DNA of 64,000 nucleotides from assembly GCA_965240325.2 (NCBI GenBank), contig OZ251249.1, positions 372,001 to 436,000 of the forward strand, read 5' to 3'. Shown here one piece after another: positions 797 to 8,732 of this stretch. The notes under the pieces are model-generated. The model saw only the letters and a program-made list of their open reading frames with translations. It made no database searches and was not told where the DNA came from. Positions within the stretch are counted from its first letter, which is position 1. The number at the start of each line of letters is the position of its first letter. Both the position numbers and the translations under genes were made by a program. Source of the stretch: Rebecca billardiae RCC1528. Its lineage: Eukaryota; Protista; Haptophyta.

Positions 797-919
797 TCCA
801 CGCAGCGGCGGGAGCGGGGCAGCACGCGGAGTCGACACTCGACCAACCACCAACCTCGCGGCGACGACGAGCTGACGACGACTGTGCTCGACGCCGATAA
901 CCGCCGTGATTCGAATATA

Positions 920-1709
920 GGGACCCACAAATTTAGTTGCCGGCTGCAGCAGGCACGACTTTGTCTCAGCCCGCACGCCCGCTACGCGCCGACCCGGGCA
1001 GAGCCCATCCGCCCGCGCATGCACCAGGCCCAGCCGCGTCAGTACATACCCACCCGGCCGCGGCACCCGCGCTCTGTGCGCCACGGTGTCGATGCGCCCG
1101 GCAGTCGGTGCGCATGCACGAGCCAGCCGGCGGGCAGCTACGGGCTGGTTTTCGGCGTGGAGCGCGGTCGTGTGAGCTGCATTAATTCAGCTGACCCCCG
1201 GCTTTTGTGCATTCGGGAGTCGTGCTGCTACGGTGGGCGTGCCACGCGCCAACTCGACGCTGGCAAAATTAGGCGACGAAAGTGCACGCGCAGCCACACG
1301 CAGCCCATATTGATGCTCTCGGAGCAGGCTCGGGCATGCACTCGATCGGCTCTGGCTGACGGCAGCGCCAAGCTGGCGGCGCGGCGCGAGGGTGCATGCG
1401 TGGCGTGGGCGGAGCTACGTCGCACACGCACCGCGCGGCGCGCGGCTCAGCGCACGGAGGCTGCCGACAGCCGGCGGCACGCAGGCAGGTCTGCTCGCCG
1501 CCAGTCGAGCTCGCCGGCCGCCGGGTACCAAACGTCAACCCAGGATGCACAGCCACGCCTATTTGTGAGGACTCGAGCAATCGGGTCCGGGCGCACCTCA
1601 TGTGCACGGCAGTGGAGTGGGCCAAGTACGCCCCTGGTATGGTGGCGCGCCGCTGCTTTGCTGCGCTGATATGGCGAACAATGTCGGGAGGCTTAAACTT
1701 GTGAGGGAC
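920..1709. repeat. Left 790-bp terminal direct repeat (MITE-like module with its own imperfect TIRs, TA on both sides)
   Basis: Reads the same as 6127-6916 (offset 5207; paired shadow ORFs translate identically). Starts TA|GGGACCCACAAATTTA and ends TAAACTTGTGAGGGAC|TA. Confidence 0.95.
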
Positions 1710-1717
1710 TAAGTGAG

Positions 1718-4229
1718 CAGCCTCGGCTGAGGCCGTGAGCTGCCGTAGGCTGATCTGACCCGACAAAAGTCGGCGCGCGAGCGCGCGCGCGCGCGGCGCG
1801 GCACCGCCCCGCTGGCACGTGGGCTCGGTGTGCCTGGGCCGCGCCGAGTGCCCCGCACCCCGATCTCGCCCAGCTAGCTCGTCCTCGCCGCGCTCTGAGG
1901 CCCCCGTAGCAGTCGTAGCTGCTCGCCGCCGCCGCAGATCGTGAAGACCAGCTGCTGTCAGCTGCTCGCTCTGAGCCGGGACATGGGGCCGCGTGGAGGA
2001 GACGCCGTGCGGCCGGGCGCGCGCGTGCGCGTCGAGCGGCATCCGGGCGCACTGCTCACGTGTCGGCGCGCCCGCCCGGCGCGCGCATCATCGCTCAGTC
2101 GCGCCGCTCTGCTGAGCTAGCCGCCGCTGGTCGCAGCCGTCGGCTGAGGCCGTGAGCTGCCGTAGGCTGATCTGACCCGACAAAAGTCGGCGCGAGCGCG
2201 CGCGCGCGCGCGGCGCCGCGCCGCCCCGCTGGCACGTGGGCTCGGTGTGCCCGGGCCACGCAGAGCACCCCGCACCCGGATCTCGCCCAGCTAGCTCGTC
2301 CTCGCCGCGCTCTGAGGCCCCCGTAGCAGTCGTAGCTGCTCGCCGCCGCCGCAGATCGTGAAGACCAGCTGCTGTCAGCTGCTCGCTCTGAGCCGGGACA
2401 TGGGGCCGCGTGGAGGAGGCGCCGTGCGGCCGGGCGCGCGCGTGCGCGTCGAGCGGCCCCTGGGCGCACTGCTCACGCGTCGGCGCGCCCGCCCGGCGCG
2501 CGCATCATCGCTCAGTCGCGCCGCTCTGCTGAGCTAGCCGCCGCTGGTCGCAGCCGTCGGCTGAGGCCGTGAGCTGCCGTAGGCTGATCTGACCCGACAA
2601 AAGTCGGCGCGAGCGCGCGCGCGCGCGCGGCGCCGCGCCGCCCCGCTGGCACGTGGGCTCGGTGTGCCCGGGCCAGGCAGAGCACCCCGCACCCGGATCT
2701 CGCCCAGCTAGCTCGTCCTCGCCGCGCTCTGAGGCCCCCGTAGCAGTCGTAGCTGCTCGCCGCCGCCGCAGATCGTGAAGACCAGCTGCTGTCAGCTGCT
2801 CGCTCTGAGCCGGGACATGGGGCCGCGTGGAGGAGGCGCCGTGCGGCCGGGCGCGCGCGTGCGCGTCGAGCGGCCCCTGGGCGCACTGCTCACGCGTCGG
2901 CGCGCCCGCCCGGCGCGCGCATCATCGCTCAGTCGCGCCGCTCTGCTGAGCTAGCCGCCGCTGGTCGCAGCCGTCGGCTGAGGCCGTGAGCTGCCGTCAG
3001 CTGATCTGACCCGACAAAAGTCGGCGCGCGAGCGCGCGCGCGCGGCGCGCCGCGCCACCTCGCTGGCACGTGGGCTCGGTGCGCCTGGGCCGCGCCGAGC
3101 ACCCCGCACCCGGATCTCGCCCAGCTAGCTCGTCCTCGCCGCGCTCTGAGGCCCCCGTAGCAGTCGTAGCTGCTCGCCGCCGCCGCAGATCGTGAAGACC
3201 AGCTGCTGTCAGCTGCTCGCTCTGAGCCGGGACATGGGGCCGCGTGGAGGAGGCGCCGTGCGGCCGGGCGCGCGCGTGCGCGTCGAGCGGCCCCTGGGCG
3301 CACTGCTCACGCGTCGGCGCGCCCGCCCGGCGCGCGCATCATCGCTCAGTCGCGCCGCTCTGCTGAGCTAGCCGCCGCTGGTCGCAGCCGTCGGCTGAGG
3401 CCGTGAGCTGCCGTCAGCTGATCTGACCCGACAAAAGTCGGCGCGCGAGCGCGCGCGCGCGGCGCGCCGCGCCACCTCGCTGGCACGTGGGCTCGGTGCG
3501 CCTGGGCCGCGCAGAGCACCCCGCACCCGGATCTCGCCCAGCTAGCTCGTCCTCGCCGCGCTCTGAGGCCCCCGTAGCAGTCGTAGCTGCTCGCCGCCGC
3601 CGCAGATCGTGAAGACCAGCTGCTGTCAGCTGCTCGCTCTGAGCCGGGACATGGGGCCGCGTGGAGGAGACGCCGTGCGGCCGGGCGCGCGCGTGCGCGT
3701 CGAGCGGCATCCGGGCGCACTGCTCACGTGTCGGCGCGCCCGCCCGGCGCGCGCATCATCGCTCAGTCGCGCCGCTCTGCTGAGCTAGCCGCCGCTGGTC
3801 GCAGCCGTCGGCTGAGGCCGTGAGCTGCCGTAAGAGCTGATCTGACCCGACAAAAGTCGGCGCGCGAGCGCGCGCGCGCGGCGCGCCGCGCCACCTCGCT
3901 GGCACGTGGGCTCGGTGCGCCTGGGCCGCGCCGAGCGTCCCGCACCCCGATCGCGCCCAGCCCGCGCGTCCTCGCCGCGCTCTGAGGCCCCCGTAGCAGT
4001 CGTAGCTGCTCGCCGCCGCCGCAGATCGTGAAGACCAGTTGCTGTCAGCTGCTCGCTCTGAGCCGGGACATGGGGCCGCGTGGAGGAGGCGCCGTGCGGC
4101 CGGGCGCGCGCGCGCGCGTCGAGCGGCCCCGGGGCGCACTGCTCACGCGTCGGCGTGCCCGCCCGGCGCGCACATCATCGCTCAGTCGCGCCGCTCTGCT
4201 GAGCTAGCCGCCGCTCGTCGCAGCCGTCG
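1718..4229. repeat. Tandem array of six ~417-bp units inside the transposon
   Basis: Landmarks recur at a 417-bp period (shadow ORF starts 2052, 2469, 2886, 3303, 3720, 4139). Units differ by only a few substitutions and small indels. No unique spacers. Confidence 0.95.
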
Positions 4230-4347
4230 TGAGACGTGACGTTAGACGTAGAGTAAGCTATAGCCTATAGGCTGATATGATATGACTCGAGATCTACTAT
4301 ACTGAGCAGCTAATAAACTATATACCATCATTGTCCGACACTGCTCT

Positions 4348-5649
4348 TCAGCGCACGCGCTGCTCACCCTTGGTCTCGACGCAGTCCTGCAGCCGACGCC
4401 GATAGGATTTGAACAGCGCCTGGATGAACTTCTTGTCGTTCCGTACCTCCTCGAACTTAGCCTTCACCACCTCCTCGAACTCCTTGAAGGTTGGCCGCTG
4501 CTTGCTCGGGTTGTCGGTGCACCACTTGTGCTTCCATGCGTTGAGAAGCTGCTCCACGCGCGCCCAGACATGCTCAATGAGCGACAAGTCGGCGCTGTTC
4601 GGCGGCCAGCTACGGCCCGGCTGACCCTCGGTGGACTTGGGGCCAAGGTGTCCCTCGGGGCCAAACCGCTCGTCGAGCCATTGGCGCACAGCCAGCGCCG
4701 TGTGGGGTGAGGCACTGTCCTGCTGGAAGATCATCTGTCTGATGAAGTCGCCGAAGAGCGCCTGGGCCTCCTTGTCCAGGAAAGGCAGCACGTCGTTCAG
4801 GTACTCCTTCCAGCACACGCCACGGCACTGCTTGCCGCGACCATTCTCATGCGTGCGGCCGTGAGTGCCCGTGGCAAAATAGAGCGGCGTGATGCCGCGA
4901 GAGCAGGCGCCGGCGTAGCCATGGATCACGCAGTCACCTGCCTGGACCTGGTTCAGCTTGCGCTTGGGCTCGTCACGCAGCGTCCACGACATCACCGTGC
5001 TCCGGTTCGTGACGTCGAACTTGAAGTACTTCGAGTCGGTGAAGAACAGCCTGTCAACCATCGCCTTGACTCTCTGCAGCCACCGTGCGAACGCCACCCG
5101 CTTCTTCGCCTGCTGAGCCGTGATCTGCTTCCTCACCTTGAGCGGCTCCCAATCCATCTTCTTCCGCGCCGCGCGGCGTAGCGTCTCGTCGGAGACGTCG
5201 AGCGCGGACGCATCGAGCGATCCAGCACCGACGGCGCGGCACGCAGCCTTCCGCACACTCTGACCAGCCGGCCCGGCGCTGAGCTCGGACGTAAGCGCCG
5301 CCTGCGCCTCGGCACTGAGGCGTGGGCGTGGACCGCGCTTCGGCTTCCCGTCAGCATCAATGTGCCAGCCCTCCGTGTGCCAGTCCATGAACCACTTCTT
5401 CATCGTCTTCTCGGTGACCTCGGCCGACCGCGCCGCCCTCTGGAAAGCTGAGGCCAACGGAGAGCCTTCATTGAGGCACAGCACGCACGCGCCGATCGCA
5501 TGGTGAAACCTCTCCTCAGGGCCCAGGGCCTTCGGGTTGTAATCCAGAGCAATACACTCCCGCGATACCCGCCTGTTCGGAGCGTAGCCGACGCGGTGGG
5601 CGCCTTTGCGCCCGCGCCGATCTTTGGGCGCGGTCGGCGCGCGGCCCAT
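4348..5649 (-). CDS. IS630/Tc1/mariner-superfamily DDE transposase, 433 aa, intronless
   Basis: HTH (AARSAEVTEKTMKKW), GPRPRL linker, second HTH (VSDETLRRAARKK). Catalytic motifs LFFTDSKYF, IFQQDSASPH and WPPNSADLSLIEHVW match Tc1 FxDE / QQDNAPxH / WPxxSPDLNPIExxW. Confidence 0.93.
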   Translation of the reverse strand: MGRAPTAPKDRRGRKGAHRVGYAPNRRVSRECIALDYNPKALGPEERFHHAIGACVLCLNEGSPLASAFQRAARSAEVTEKTMKKWFMDWHTEGWHIDADGKPKRGPRPRLSAEAQAALTSELSAGPAGQSVRKAACRAVGAGSLDASALDVSDETLRRAARKKMDWEPLKVRKQITAQQAKKRVAFARWLQRVKAMVDRLFFTDSKYFKFDVTNRSTVMSWTLRDEPKRKLNQVQAGDCVIHGYAGACSRGITPLYFATGTHGRTHENGRGKQCRGVCWKEYLNDVLPFLDKEAQALFGDFIRQMIFQQDSASPHTALAVRQWLDERFGPEGHLGPKSTEGQPGRSWPPNSADLSLIEHVWARVEQLLNAWKHKWCTDNPSKQRPTFKEFEEVVKAKFEEVRNDKKFIQALFKSYRRRLQDCVETKGEQRVR

Positions 5650-6126
5650 CAGCCGCCGCCGGCTGCTTGGCCACCAAAGATGACTGCACGTTACGTCCCG
5701 AGCCGCCCAAAGTTGATCTTACAGCTGACGAAGCGGTGTGGCCTCTATTCGAACTCGTTCCGTCCATGGCGAGCGCCCCAGCGACGCAGCCGCCGCGTGC
5801 GCTGGGGCCGCACGCCCTCGCGGATGTGCGCTGGGCACGAGCTCGGCGCCACGGGTTGAGCTCGTCGAGCTATGACAAGCGGCGTGGCGCAAGTCCAACC
5901 CAGTGGAGGCCCCAACTGCCGGCCCCGCCGCCGCGCGGGAGCGTCCGATTAACCTCAGCTGCTCTGCGCAAGATGTGGGCTCCTGTGCCCCACCAACTCG
6001 CCGGAGGCGGACGACGCGCTGGGATCGCTGCACGGCGGGAATATCCCCGACCCATGTGGACCGACGCCGGCCTCGCTCGCCGTCGCCCTCGCCCTCGTTC
6101 CGACTTTTCTACTACCTGCTCACTTA

Positions 6127-6916
6127 GGGACCCACAAATTTAGTTGCCGGCTGCAGCAGGCACGACTTTGTCTCAGCCCGCACGCCCGCTACGCGCCGAC
6201 CCGGGCAGAGCCCATCCGCCCGCGCATGCACCAGGCCCAGCCGCGTCAGTACATACCCACCCGGCCGCGGCACCCGCGCTCTGTGCGCCACGGTGTCGAT
6301 GCGCCCGGCAGTCGGTGCGCATGCACGAGCCAGCCGGCGGGCAGCTACGGGCTGGTTTTCGGCGTGGAGCGCGGTCGTGTGAGCTGCATTAATTCAGCTG
6401 ACCCCCGGCTTTTGTGCATTCGGGAGTCGTGCTGCTACGGTGGGCGTGCCACGCGCCAACTCGACGCTGGCAAAATTAGGCGACGAAAGTGCACGCGCAG
6501 CCACACGCAGCCCATATTGATGCTCTCGGAGCAGGCTCGGGCATGCACTCGATCGGCTCTGGCTGACGGCAGCGCCAAGCTGGCGGCGCGGCGCGAGGGT
6601 GCATGCGTGGCGTGGGCGGAGCTACGTCGCACACGCACCGCGCGGCGCGCGGCTCAGCGCACGGAGGCTGCCGACAGCCGGCGGCACGCAGGCAGGTCTG
6701 CTCGCCGCCAGTCGAGCTCGCCGGCCGCCGGGTACCAAACGTCAACCCAGGATGCACAGCCACGCCTATTTGTGAGGACTCGAGCAATCGGGTCCGGGCG
6801 CACCTCATGTGCACGGCAGTGGAGTGGGCCAAGTACGCCCCTGGTATGGTGGCGCGCCGCTGCTTTGCTGCGCTGATATGGCGAACAATGTCGGGAGGCT
6901 TAAACTTGTGAGGGAC
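6127..6916. repeat. Right 790-bp terminal direct repeat
   Basis: Second copy of 920-1709. Preceded by CTGCTCACT-TA and followed by TATA. Confidence 0.95.
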
Positions 6917-8732
6917 TATAGGCGCCCAGGTCCGGAACGAAACGCCTGTAGCGCTACTACCGTAGTGTATTTATTCCCTGAACTTGAACCATCATAGGCC
7001 ATCATGGGGGTATTACAAAACTCTAATCACACGCCTGTCAACCAAGTGTGCAAGTTAAATAATAGATGAATGAGTGACTTGCTTGCAAGCGCGCGGGAGC
7101 AAGGGCCGTACCTTGGCGGCAGGTTGAAGACGAAGACTAGTTGGAGCAAAGGAATAAGGAATAAACTGTGCCCTGGCGGGCGCCGGGGGGGTCGGCGGGC
7201 CGTGCCAGTGCTGTCGCAATGTATCCTTTGCGGGTTCGCGTCTTTCCACATTCGCTCGTGGCCGTGGGTGACGGACAGTCGAGTGCAAGGACCAGTGACA
7301 CGTGAAGTTGGCTCCCCGACGTGATGTACACACGTTTTACTCGGTCTGTCGCGGGCTCTTAGAGTATTGTATGCGCATCAGCGAGGCCCACACCCACGAG
7401 GGAATGTGCAGCACGCGGGGCGGGGCGGGTAGCCCGTTGCTCCGCGCGAGCGCGGGTACGCGCTGTATGTGCCGCATGTCGACCGCGATGGCGTAATCGA
7501 GCGCCTCGCCGCCGACGAAGCCGCCAGAGTAGATCATGTGCATGTCCTCCTGCCGCCAGCCGAGCCCGAGAGCGGTCGTCGCGAGGATGCTTGCCGGTGT
7601 CCGCTCCAGGCATGATGGGCTCGGCGCAGGTCGCGTTGACGTCGTACACGGCCGCCACGCTGAGCACGAGCGCGTTGACGTTCACGCGGTCGTCGCTCTT
7701 CGCATCTTCGACAGGTCTGGCGCTCGCGTGCTCGGCGGCACGAGGAGCTGTTGGTTGTGCGCGCGCGCGCGCACAGCGACAGCGTGTGCCACTCGCGATC
7801 GAGAGTGGGCAAGCGCTGCTCACGCGAGCACACGAATCGCAGCGCATCCGTCACCGGCGTGACGACTTCCGCCTCGTCCCGCAGCGCCTGCGCCATGGAC
7901 GAGGCCATGGCGCGGCGATGTTGCATGCTCGACGTTTCATCTCTCTGCGGATGGCATCACGGGCTTTTCTGTGTCGCGCTGCGGCGAGGGTCGCCAACTC
8001 GCGATGACGCGGTTGCTGCCACGGCGACAGACCCGGGAGGTGCGTCCGCTGCGCGTCGTACGCCGTTGGCGCTGCGCTTCCGTCGCATTGGTCACCGTCG
8101 ACGCCATGCAGGCCGGACGTGGGCTTCGGCTGAGGGACCGGACCGCGAGCAATGACTGAGTCCGGTGCGCGGATTCCGGCGATCGAGTTCAGAAGGCCGC
8201 GCCAAATCTTGCGTCGCGTGCGATGGCGCTTCCCGCCCGCGAGACGCCTCGTGATGAGGGCTTTCTCGCACCGAGCCCGACGCGCGACGGTGGATCGCGC
8301 GAGGCGGTCATCGTGCGCAGCGCATGATGCTATGGCCGGTGCGAGCTTTCGACGTGCACGTCGGGCGAGGATCGCCCCAGGTCTCACGATCGTGTCGACG
8401 CGCCGAGCGTACCGCTCCAAACGCGTCGATTTAGCCCCCGTTCGACCTGCACGCGAGACGACGAGGGCAGCAATCGCGAATCGGGCGAAAACTCGTCTAG
8501 GGAATCCTCGCGCGATGTCCGCGCCGGCGTTGGATTTGGCGCGCGCGGCCCACGCGCTCCGCGCCATCCGCTAACTCTTTTTCGGCCGAGCGTCCCCAGT
8601 GGGAGCTGCGAGGGCGCCCGGTAGTGAGCGAAGCGATTTTCTTTTCTTGGCGAGGCGATTTTCTTTTTTCTTTTTCTTTTTCTTATCTTTTTCCCGGGCA
8701 CTACAAGGGGCGGACCTACGGCCCGCCATATA

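Follow-up and report, generated by a model that had tools for sequence, protein, structure and literature searches.

A mobile element in the haptophyte alga Rebecca billardiae RCC1528 combines a predicted Tc1-type transposase with long direct repeats at its two ends. It lies in a stretch of 64,000 nucleotides of contig OZ251249.1 (C33:372001-436000, GC 72%; hereafter the window), in a genome of 72 Mb in 41 contigs. We consider it, with a probability of about 0.8, to be one copy of a composite-like Tc1/mariner DNA transposon with the layout LTDR-INT-LTDR, in which modules ending in TA would be cut with a 2-nt stagger and the two LTDRs would be kept alike. Here LTDR stands for the long terminal direct repeat, a 790-bp module, and INT for the core between the two repeats; both terms are taken from the paper on KolobokP (PMC9587614). 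The layout recurs at other sites in this genome, where it defines a family that we call F1, and in divergent relatives.

Layout of the element and its family in the genome

A preliminary description of this DNA had noticed two identical 790-bp direct repeats between TA dinucleotides, imperfectly inverted module termini, and a 4.4-kb core carrying an intact transposase gene and a 6x417-bp array. All of these observations were confirmed. The repeat is exact for 794 nt at an offset of 5207, and each copy consists of a 790-bp body (920-1709 and 6127-6916) with a TA on either side; the ends of the body match as inverted repeats at 11 of 16 positions. INT is 4,413 bp long, encodes a protein of 433 aa and holds 6.0 satellite copies (Table 1). 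Two features had been missed: INT has 9-bp inverted termini of its own (1712-1720 and 6116-6124), each adjoining a TA, and a second TA adjoins each outer TA of the element, so that the outer flanks read TATA. The transposase gene is the sole open reading frame (ORF) of the element that bears a domain. Since none of the seven other ORFs matched Pfam and an Rfam search of the element matched no RNA family, the element holds no reverse transcriptase (RT), gag or tyrosine recombinase, as had been stated.

The same structure is found elsewhere in the genome, where the LTDR occurs about 40 times, mostly as same-strand pairs, and the unique part of INT 23 times. All 23 transposase ORFs are open, and they are 99-100% identical to one another. 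Every one of them lies inside an LTDR-bracketed structure, at at least 11 different sites, so that no intact transposase copy without 790-bp flanks exists among the 23. LTDR pairs are present on C33, C39, C35, C30, C10, C7, C3, C1 (several) and C17, and their flanks differ: across all insertions with available flanks, those of different copies are mutually unrelated.

We built maps of the arrays from match coordinates, junctions and 1.5-kb flanks; the maps are partly inferred. Simple LTDR-INT-LTDR elements, among which the number of satellite units varies, occur on C33, C39, C35, C10, C1 (twice) and C17, whereas elements of the form LTDR-(INT)n-LTDR occur on C3 (two INTs), C30 (three) and C7 (four). 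C1 also carries a long alternating (LTDR-INT)n array and an LTDR-TA-LTDR dimer (C1:2318315-2319896), and solo LTDRs with TATA flanks of their own are found on C8, C13 and other contigs. Full copies at other sites and solo 790-bp modules, both anticipated by the preliminary description, are therefore present.

The joints between modules follow a narrow set of patterns. Inner joints always consist of a single TA, and the INT-TA-INT joint is a perfect 20-bp palindrome that we found six times. The right end of INT continues only into TA+LTDR or TA+INT, and its left end is preceded only by LTDR+TA or INT+TA; a genome-wide search for an INT end followed by TATA returned nothing. Nor did genome-wide searches return any head-to-head or tail-to-tail joint of LTDRs, whereas the control pattern, the head-to-tail LTDR-TA-LTDR joint, was found exactly once. 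The INT-TA-LTDR joint is also spanned by a Logan contig of run ERR14847149, which is independent of the assembly. The family is real and young, and arrival at new sites takes place only via the outermost LTDR termini, that is, the left end of the left LTDR and the right end of the right LTDR. The element is probably still active.

The 790-bp module has the attributes of a miniature inverted-repeat transposable element (MITE): it is short, non-coding, bounded by terminal inverted repeats (TIRs) and flanked by TA, and independent copies of it are present. It may be independently mobile, but the solos could also come from LTDR-LTDR recombination. Launch of each module as a MITE and release of a circle of ~5.2 kb, both suggested previously, are plausible. 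The view of the transposase as cargo held in part: the gene does lie in the core, but the core is not plain cargo, since it has its own TA-flanked termini and forms core-TA-core concatemers.

On its own, the 433-aa ORF gives a sub-threshold match to DDE_3 (PF13358; 15.8 bits against a cutoff of 28.6), and a word-index protein search with it retrieved only itself. An exhaustive HMMER search returned 400 homologs. A profile made from the transposase and 41 homologs was compared with solved structures and matched the catalytic domain of Sleeping Beauty (E 1e-40) as well as Mos1 (4.5e-16). The same 42-sequence profile matched the N-terminal DNA-binding domain of Tc3 (4e-7), as well as the SETMAR DNA-binding domain and the paired domain; the assignment of an N-terminal paired-like helix-turn-helix is made at the level of the profile, not of the single transposase sequence. 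PF13358 is present in 38 of the 42 aligned sequences, the homologs carry HTH_Tnp_Tc3_2 or HTH_32, and the catalytic triad D205, D311 and E359 is invariant throughout the alignment. Here 47 residues separate the second D from the E; the four nearest relatives have 41-46, and most other sequences 32-39. Neighbours identified with a protein language model are Tc1-like clusters.

These results identify the ORF as a Tc1-type transposase, DD47E, with an unusually long D-E spacer, and by its enzyme the element belongs to the Tc1/mariner (IS630-Tc1-mariner) superfamily. The profile matches and the triad support the earlier designation of a Tc1/mariner DNA transposon shaped like a long terminal repeat (LTR) element. 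In structure it is not a canonical Tc1/mariner element, because no single TIR pair encloses the transposase gene: the outer ends are direct repeats, and INT is never an outer boundary. Two further open Tc1-like frames in the genome (C29:738919-739698 and C20:1683511-1684290) show 33% identity to residues 174-428 of the transposase.

The position of the satellite within INT is informative about its origin. Its units show 97% matches. Unit 1 begins at the left terminus of INT, units 2-6 repeat it from the sixth base onward, and past the last unit the sequence diverges into the 3' flank of the transposase gene. The satellite is not foreign DNA: it consists of the 417 bp at the left end of INT itself, amplified in tandem. 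The 417-bp unit is found nowhere in the genome except inside these elements. Every unit carries AAAAGTCGG, and one inverted copy of this motif lies at 6100-6108, 17-25 nt from the other INT end. We infer that AAAAGTCGG is a candidate protein-binding site.

Table 1 Features of the element in the window (positions are those of the window).
Feature	Position	Strand	Basis
Left outer TA, best read as target-site duplication	916..917		TATA flanks, TA-run statistics
TA, on that reading the element's own terminal dinucleotide	918..919		TA-run statistics
Left LTDR, 790-bp body between two TAs, imperfect 16-nt inverted termini, non-coding	918..1711	+	Exact repeat, ORF scans
INT, 4,413 bp, own 9-bp inverted termini	1712..6124	- (orientation of transposase gene)	Terminus comparison
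Array of six 417-bp units, amplified in tandem from INT's left-terminal ~417 bp	1717..4229		Repeat analysis
Predicted intact 433-aa Tc1-like DDE transposase, triad D205/D311/E359	4348..5649	-	Profile, alignment
Right LTDR, all 794 nt identical to left LTDR, same private T at module position 647	6125..6918	+	Exact repeat
Right outer TA, putative second copy of target-site duplication	6919..6920		Flanks, TA-run statistics

Some copies of F1 sequences show further rearrangements. The long alternating array on C1 (C1:2329005-2390503; L018, L023, L045, L049 and L050) is bordered on its two sides by one and the same right-hand flank in opposite orientations, and it contains Ns towards the middle; this reflects either a genuine inverted duplication or mis-assembly by fold-back. 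On C35, some 1.7 kb of DNA interrupts a 790-bp module (C35:669272-669679 and 671367-671758), with a 7-nt overlap of module positions 397-403, which indicates insertion by an element of a different kind. In a Logan contig of run ERR14847150 (L055:1887-2245), INT sequence joining at window position ~4242, past the satellite, runs into 359 bp of unrelated DNA after TAA, as if another element had inserted into one copy of INT. Module-like copies that are older, being 83-84% identical over positions ~5-688 (C11:554068-554812 and C3:716219-716936), hint at an earlier wave or at a related module family.

Relatives with the same build

Searches with the transposase led to three relatives that share the grammar of F1, which itself combines an LTDR of 790 bp (920-1709) with an INT of 4,413 bp and a 417-bp satellite. 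F2 (P0002) resides in the same genome, on C11, and its transposase is 37% identical to that of F1. Its LTDR measures 808 bp (L068:1704-2511), with termini matching at 17 of 20 positions; its INT starts AGTG and contains the transposase gene and then a satellite. F2 has TATA outer flanks and single-TA inner joints, as does F1, and includes dozens of non-autonomous arrays on C7, C11, C14, C15, C17 and other contigs. The other two relatives come from metagenomes. F3 (P0004; 33% local and 30% global aa identity to F1) has an LTDR of 792 bp (L075:5408-6199) and an INT of 2,200 bp; its scaffold reads LTDR-INT-INT-LTDR-INT, and the left outer flank is TATA. F4 (P0005; 33% local and 29% global aa identity to F1) has an LTDR of 793 bp (L077:218-1010) and is represented by a self-closing unit of 3,217 bp. 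The joints of both F3 and F4 consist of a single TA.

Judged by these contigs, at least four divergent lineages of the transposase have kept the grammar. Since F2-F4 share it at 29-37% aa identity, the layout is inherited, rather than the product of two chance MITE insertions or of an assembly artefact. The details vary. The INT inverted terminus is 3-5 bp long in F2 and F3, compared with 9 bp in F1. The F2 satellite has a period of 415 bp (L064:2933-4314), or 409 bp in the non-autonomous copies (L070, reverse strand, 391-1197), and is internal rather than terminal; despite the near-equal period, comparison of the F1 and F2 units found no sequence similarity between them, and the F3 INT has no satellite array.

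The LTDRs themselves are 790, 808, 792 and 793 bp long in F1-F4 and share no sequence beyond a few terminal bases, which points to a physical constraint on LTDR length. The LTDR ORFs gave no Pfam match, and neither six-frame similarity nor a conserved ORF was found among the F1, F2 and F3 modules. The LTDR DNA of F1 and F2 is alike at the termini only, apart from a weak global score in reverse orientation, by which the LTDR has a matching orientation with respect to the transposase gene in the two families.

In a maximum-likelihood tree, F1 and F2 (100/99) and F3 and F4 (99/95) form firm pairs, and these pairs group weakly (85/74) with other transposases that have 40-47 residues from the second D to the E. 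We also scanned metagenomes with an alignment of F1-F4 and P0003. The informative contigs carried more distant, canonical relatives: ordinary elements of ~1.3 kb that are bounded by a single perfect TIR pair and flanked by TA. As the distant relatives are ordinary single-TIR elements and F1-F4 share the LTDR build, this build is a derived and conserved trait of a Tc1-like sub-lineage. The contigs of P0003, P0050, P0056 and P0006 were too short or displayed no module. Three short metagenomic contigs of distant relatives (L088:279-1066, L093:131-919 and L084:36-789) have a TA-flanked TIR module of 750-785 bp just upstream of the transposase ORF; they may represent further LTDR-type families, and are too short to show a second module.

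TA boundaries and proposed modes of movement

All 13 F1 sites for which both flanks are available have TATA as their outer flank, and at 12 of these it is isolated, that is, exactly TATA on both sides. This pattern can be parsed in three ways: a TATATA target with duplication of TA (parse A); a TA target with duplication of TA, where each module ends in TA and neighbours overlap by that TA (parse B); or duplication of TATA (parse C). We compared them using the background of TA runs in two samples, one of 58 kb from the window and one of 41 kb from flanks. The isolated fraction of eligible sites is 0.88-0.90 under parse B, 0.39-0.42 under parse C and 0.04-0.10 under parse A, and the likelihood of 12 isolated sites out of 13 is 0.34-0.37, 1-2e-4 and below 1e-10, respectively. 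We accordingly disfavour a TATATA target with TA duplication and a 4-bp TATA duplication. The TA-run statistics favour a putative TA target with TA-terminated, overlapping modules. Parse B agrees with the known cleavage by Tc1/Tc3-type transposases, in which the 3' cut coincides with the end of the element and the 5' cut lies 2 nt further in. A precedent comes from Drosophila, where head-to-tail joints of Bari1 are without the first two nucleotides of one end (PMC4877112). Within INT, a difference in TA number separates two subfamilies: subfamily A reads TATATA at window positions 4319-4324 and subfamily B (L037, L038 and L043) reads TATA, which could be microsatellite slippage or a footprint.

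These features can be combined into a scheme for the movement of the element. The DD47E transposase would cut the TA-terminated ends of the modules with the 2-nt stagger typical of Tc1-like enzymes, which would leave mutually complementary TA overhangs. Neighbouring modules would overlap by one TA, and insertion at a chromosomal TA would produce the TATA flanks. Where an inner module is excised, the break would close seamlessly as a single TA and so create INT-TA-INT and LTDR-TA-LTDR joints, while unequal crossover between LTDRs would yield multimers and solos. The two LTDRs of an element would be kept alike either by excision together with crossover or by re-integration of an LTDR+INT circle.

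Variants shared between the two LTDRs of an element bear on the last of these steps. Both LTDRs in the window have T at module position 647, where all 28 other full-length 790-bp copies compared (L003-L029) have C, and the C17 copy has G2T in both of its LTDRs, a change also seen in the C13 solo. In these two informative elements, module identity is higher within a copy than between copies, the relationship that had been put forward as a sign of copying. In F2, the two LTDRs of an element likewise fall into the same rare score class (1440/1440 on C17; 1422/1422 on C14). Moreover, INT subfamilies A and B are separated by 8 substitutions and 2 indels in 1,895 bp and their LTDRs by no fixed difference, where about 3 would be expected at the same rate. 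Because pairs share variants and the subfamilies lack fixed LTDR differences, some process must copy or exchange LTDRs. This could happen by unequal crossover within multimers, by break-induced conversion once an LTDR has been excised, or by way of an LTDR+INT circle that re-inserts, and the data prefer none of the three.

Several observations weigh against our reading of the element. The termini of LTDR and INT are unrelated in sequence, and free ligation of excised modules cannot be frequent, because palindromic TA ends should also permit joints of the head-to-head kind, which are absent. The TA-run statistics presuppose that eligible sites are used uniformly, draw on a background of ~100 kb, and are an argument rather than a proof. 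A search for empty sites, in which the flanks of available insertions were compared with the available DNA, found only short, unrelated repeats in common; the right flank of the C3 copy looked promising but proved not to be an insertion that cleanly interrupts a repeat. Evidence that the LTDRs evolve in concert is also thin: the two shared private SNPs stand against a singleton, C145T, in one LTDR of a C1 copy (L029), and 4 differences separate the two LTDRs of F3 that lie on the same metagenomic scaffold.

The strongest competing account is that the family propagates mainly via a circular LTDR+INT unit, formed by LTDR-LTDR recombination and inserted either replicatively or beside a resident LTDR in an IS26-like or cointegrate fashion, such that both new LTDRs derive from one. 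A route of this kind was considered by the KolobokP authors too (PMC9587614). It would explain why both LTDRs of an element share private variants and why LTDRs are identical across INT subfamilies that differ by the substitutions and indels given above, yet gene conversion or unequal crossover accounts for the shared variants equally well. Two metagenomic contigs (L076 and L077) self-close with a unit that is exactly LTDR+INT, but arrays of the form (LTDR-INT)n would yield such contigs just as readily. Tc1/mariner enzymes, furthermore, are generally known as cut-and-paste enzymes that cleave both strands. We regard the circle as an unlikely main route. Equally doubtful is a distinct mode of movement that would join cohesive 2-nt TA ends and seamless excision with circular re-insertion of LTDR+INT, regenerating both LTDRs from one. 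If it were true, this mode would be a eukaryotic counterpart of the IS26 translocatable-unit/cointegrate pathway run by a Tc1-type enzyme, and the ~800-bp module length and the satellite at the INT end would be functional parts of that cycle.

Three further explanations are less probable still. An ordinary autonomous Tc1-like core could have received a MITE in each flanking TA by chance, the whole block then being segmentally duplicated; INT does have TA-flanked inverted termini of its own, and these are unrelated to the LTDR termini. Segmental duplication, however, does not fit with the unrelated flanks of the copies, and chance nesting does not fit with outer boundaries that are always LTDR termini with TATA, with a genome that has no core without LTDR brackets, or with the same grammar and modules of ~800 bp in four transposase lineages at 29-37% identity, and we judge this history to be very improbable. 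A collapsed or mis-joined repeat could have created the 794-nt duplication during assembly, and the 100% identity of the two repeat copies and the oddly inverted large C1 array with its Ns are what one might see in that case. Such an error would hardly produce the same structure at at least 11 loci with differing satellite numbers, the same INT-TA-LTDR joint in the Logan contig of run ERR14847149, and the same joints in metagenomic relatives, and we give it almost no weight. Just as remote is a non-autonomous LTR-type retroelement that captured a transposase gene. Long direct terminal repeats, identical repeat pairs and solos are all reminiscent of one, but no RT, integrase or gag domain is present, the repeats have inverted termini, TA joints and GG..AC ends between the TAs in place of TG..CA, the flank is always TATA and not a variable 4-6-bp duplication, and the INT-TA-INT and LTDR-TA-LTDR forms are not products of reverse transcription. 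The composite-like Tc1/mariner transposon is thus the reading we prefer.

Comparison with known systems

Before 2022, no eukaryotic DNA transposon with long terminal direct repeats was known, and KolobokP was presented as unique, with the statement that no other DNA transposon has LTDRs (PMC9587614). The preliminary claim that no family with this architecture had been described was wrong, as KolobokP has it in another superfamily. In our full-text literature search, KolobokP was the one described case of the architecture, and no Tc1/mariner element with LTDRs was found. Because the same grammar occurs in Tc1/mariner elements that have no homing endonuclease, the LTDR layout arose at least twice and cannot depend on the KolobokP nuclease. 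It is now seen in the best-studied superfamily, and in a workable system: a small algal genome with 23 intact transposase genes and near-identical copies. The questions that it opens include how a cut-and-paste enzyme maintains a pair of direct repeats, whether movement passes through circles, and how transposon ends give rise to satellites. Repeat-annotation pipelines likely misfile such elements as LTR retrotransposons and MITEs.

With LTR retrotransposons, the element shares its overall shape, identical repeat pairs with private variants in common, and solo repeats, but it differs in having no reverse transcription machinery, in its TA joints, in the inverted termini of its repeats and in its INT-INT concatemers. 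Canonical Tc1/mariner elements and their Stowaway-like MITEs resemble it in their homologous DDE transposase, in the TA at all boundaries and in short, non-coding, TIR-bounded derivatives. They have one TIR pair around the gene, whereas here the gene-bearing part has inverted termini of 3-9 bp and never stands alone in the chromosome. Bari1 of D. melanogaster (PMC4877112) is Tc1-like and arranged head-to-tail, with joints 2 nt shorter than two full ends, as here if modules end in TA. Bari1, however, forms one heterochromatic cluster of a canonical single-TIR element, with no second module and no LTDR-bounded mobile unit, and the arrangement is not conserved across lineages.

Bacterial composite and pseudo-compound transposons (Tn9 and the IS26 translocatable unit) also have two direct mobile modules that bracket a centre, and the whole moves as a block; as in the IS26 type, a circle of one module and the central segment is plausible as an intermediate. 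The roles of the parts are exchanged, however. In the bacterial assemblies the flanking insertion sequence encodes the transposase and the centre is cargo, whereas in our element the enzyme is encoded in the centre and the flanking modules are non-coding. Those assemblies are opportunistic, whereas the layout described here has been inherited over deep divergence.

The closest match is KolobokP of animals (Mob DNA 2022;13:24, PMC9587614), which has the layout LTDR-INT-LTDR, with short TIRs in the LTDRs and the transposase in INT. It was reported to be constrained in LTDR length, to occur also as solo LTDRs and in the forms (LTDR-INT)n-LTDR and LTDR-(INT)n-LTDR, and to have only one target-like motif where two INTs meet. 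These forms and joints have their equivalents in F1: solos on C8 and C13, the dimer at C1:2318315, three and four INTs in a row on C30 and C7, the alternating array on C1 and the six INT-TA-INT joints. The two differ in their enzymes (a Kolobok DDD/E transposase there, a Tc1-like DD47E here), in their target duplications (3-5 bp there, putatively TA here), in their hosts (animals there, a GC-rich alga and metagenomes here) and in the INT-derived satellite, which occurs only here. KolobokP also encodes, downstream of the transposase, a His-Me finger (I-PpoI-like) homing endonuclease to which its authors give a key role in multiplication (PMC9587614), whereas in our element neither the ORF list nor Pfam revealed a second domain-bearing ORF, and hence no His-Me nuclease of that kind. 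The element resembles the KolobokP-type composite-like build in its working and is not a member of the KolobokP lineage; what is new here is the LTDR architecture in Tc1/mariner, in an algal host and without the nuclease.

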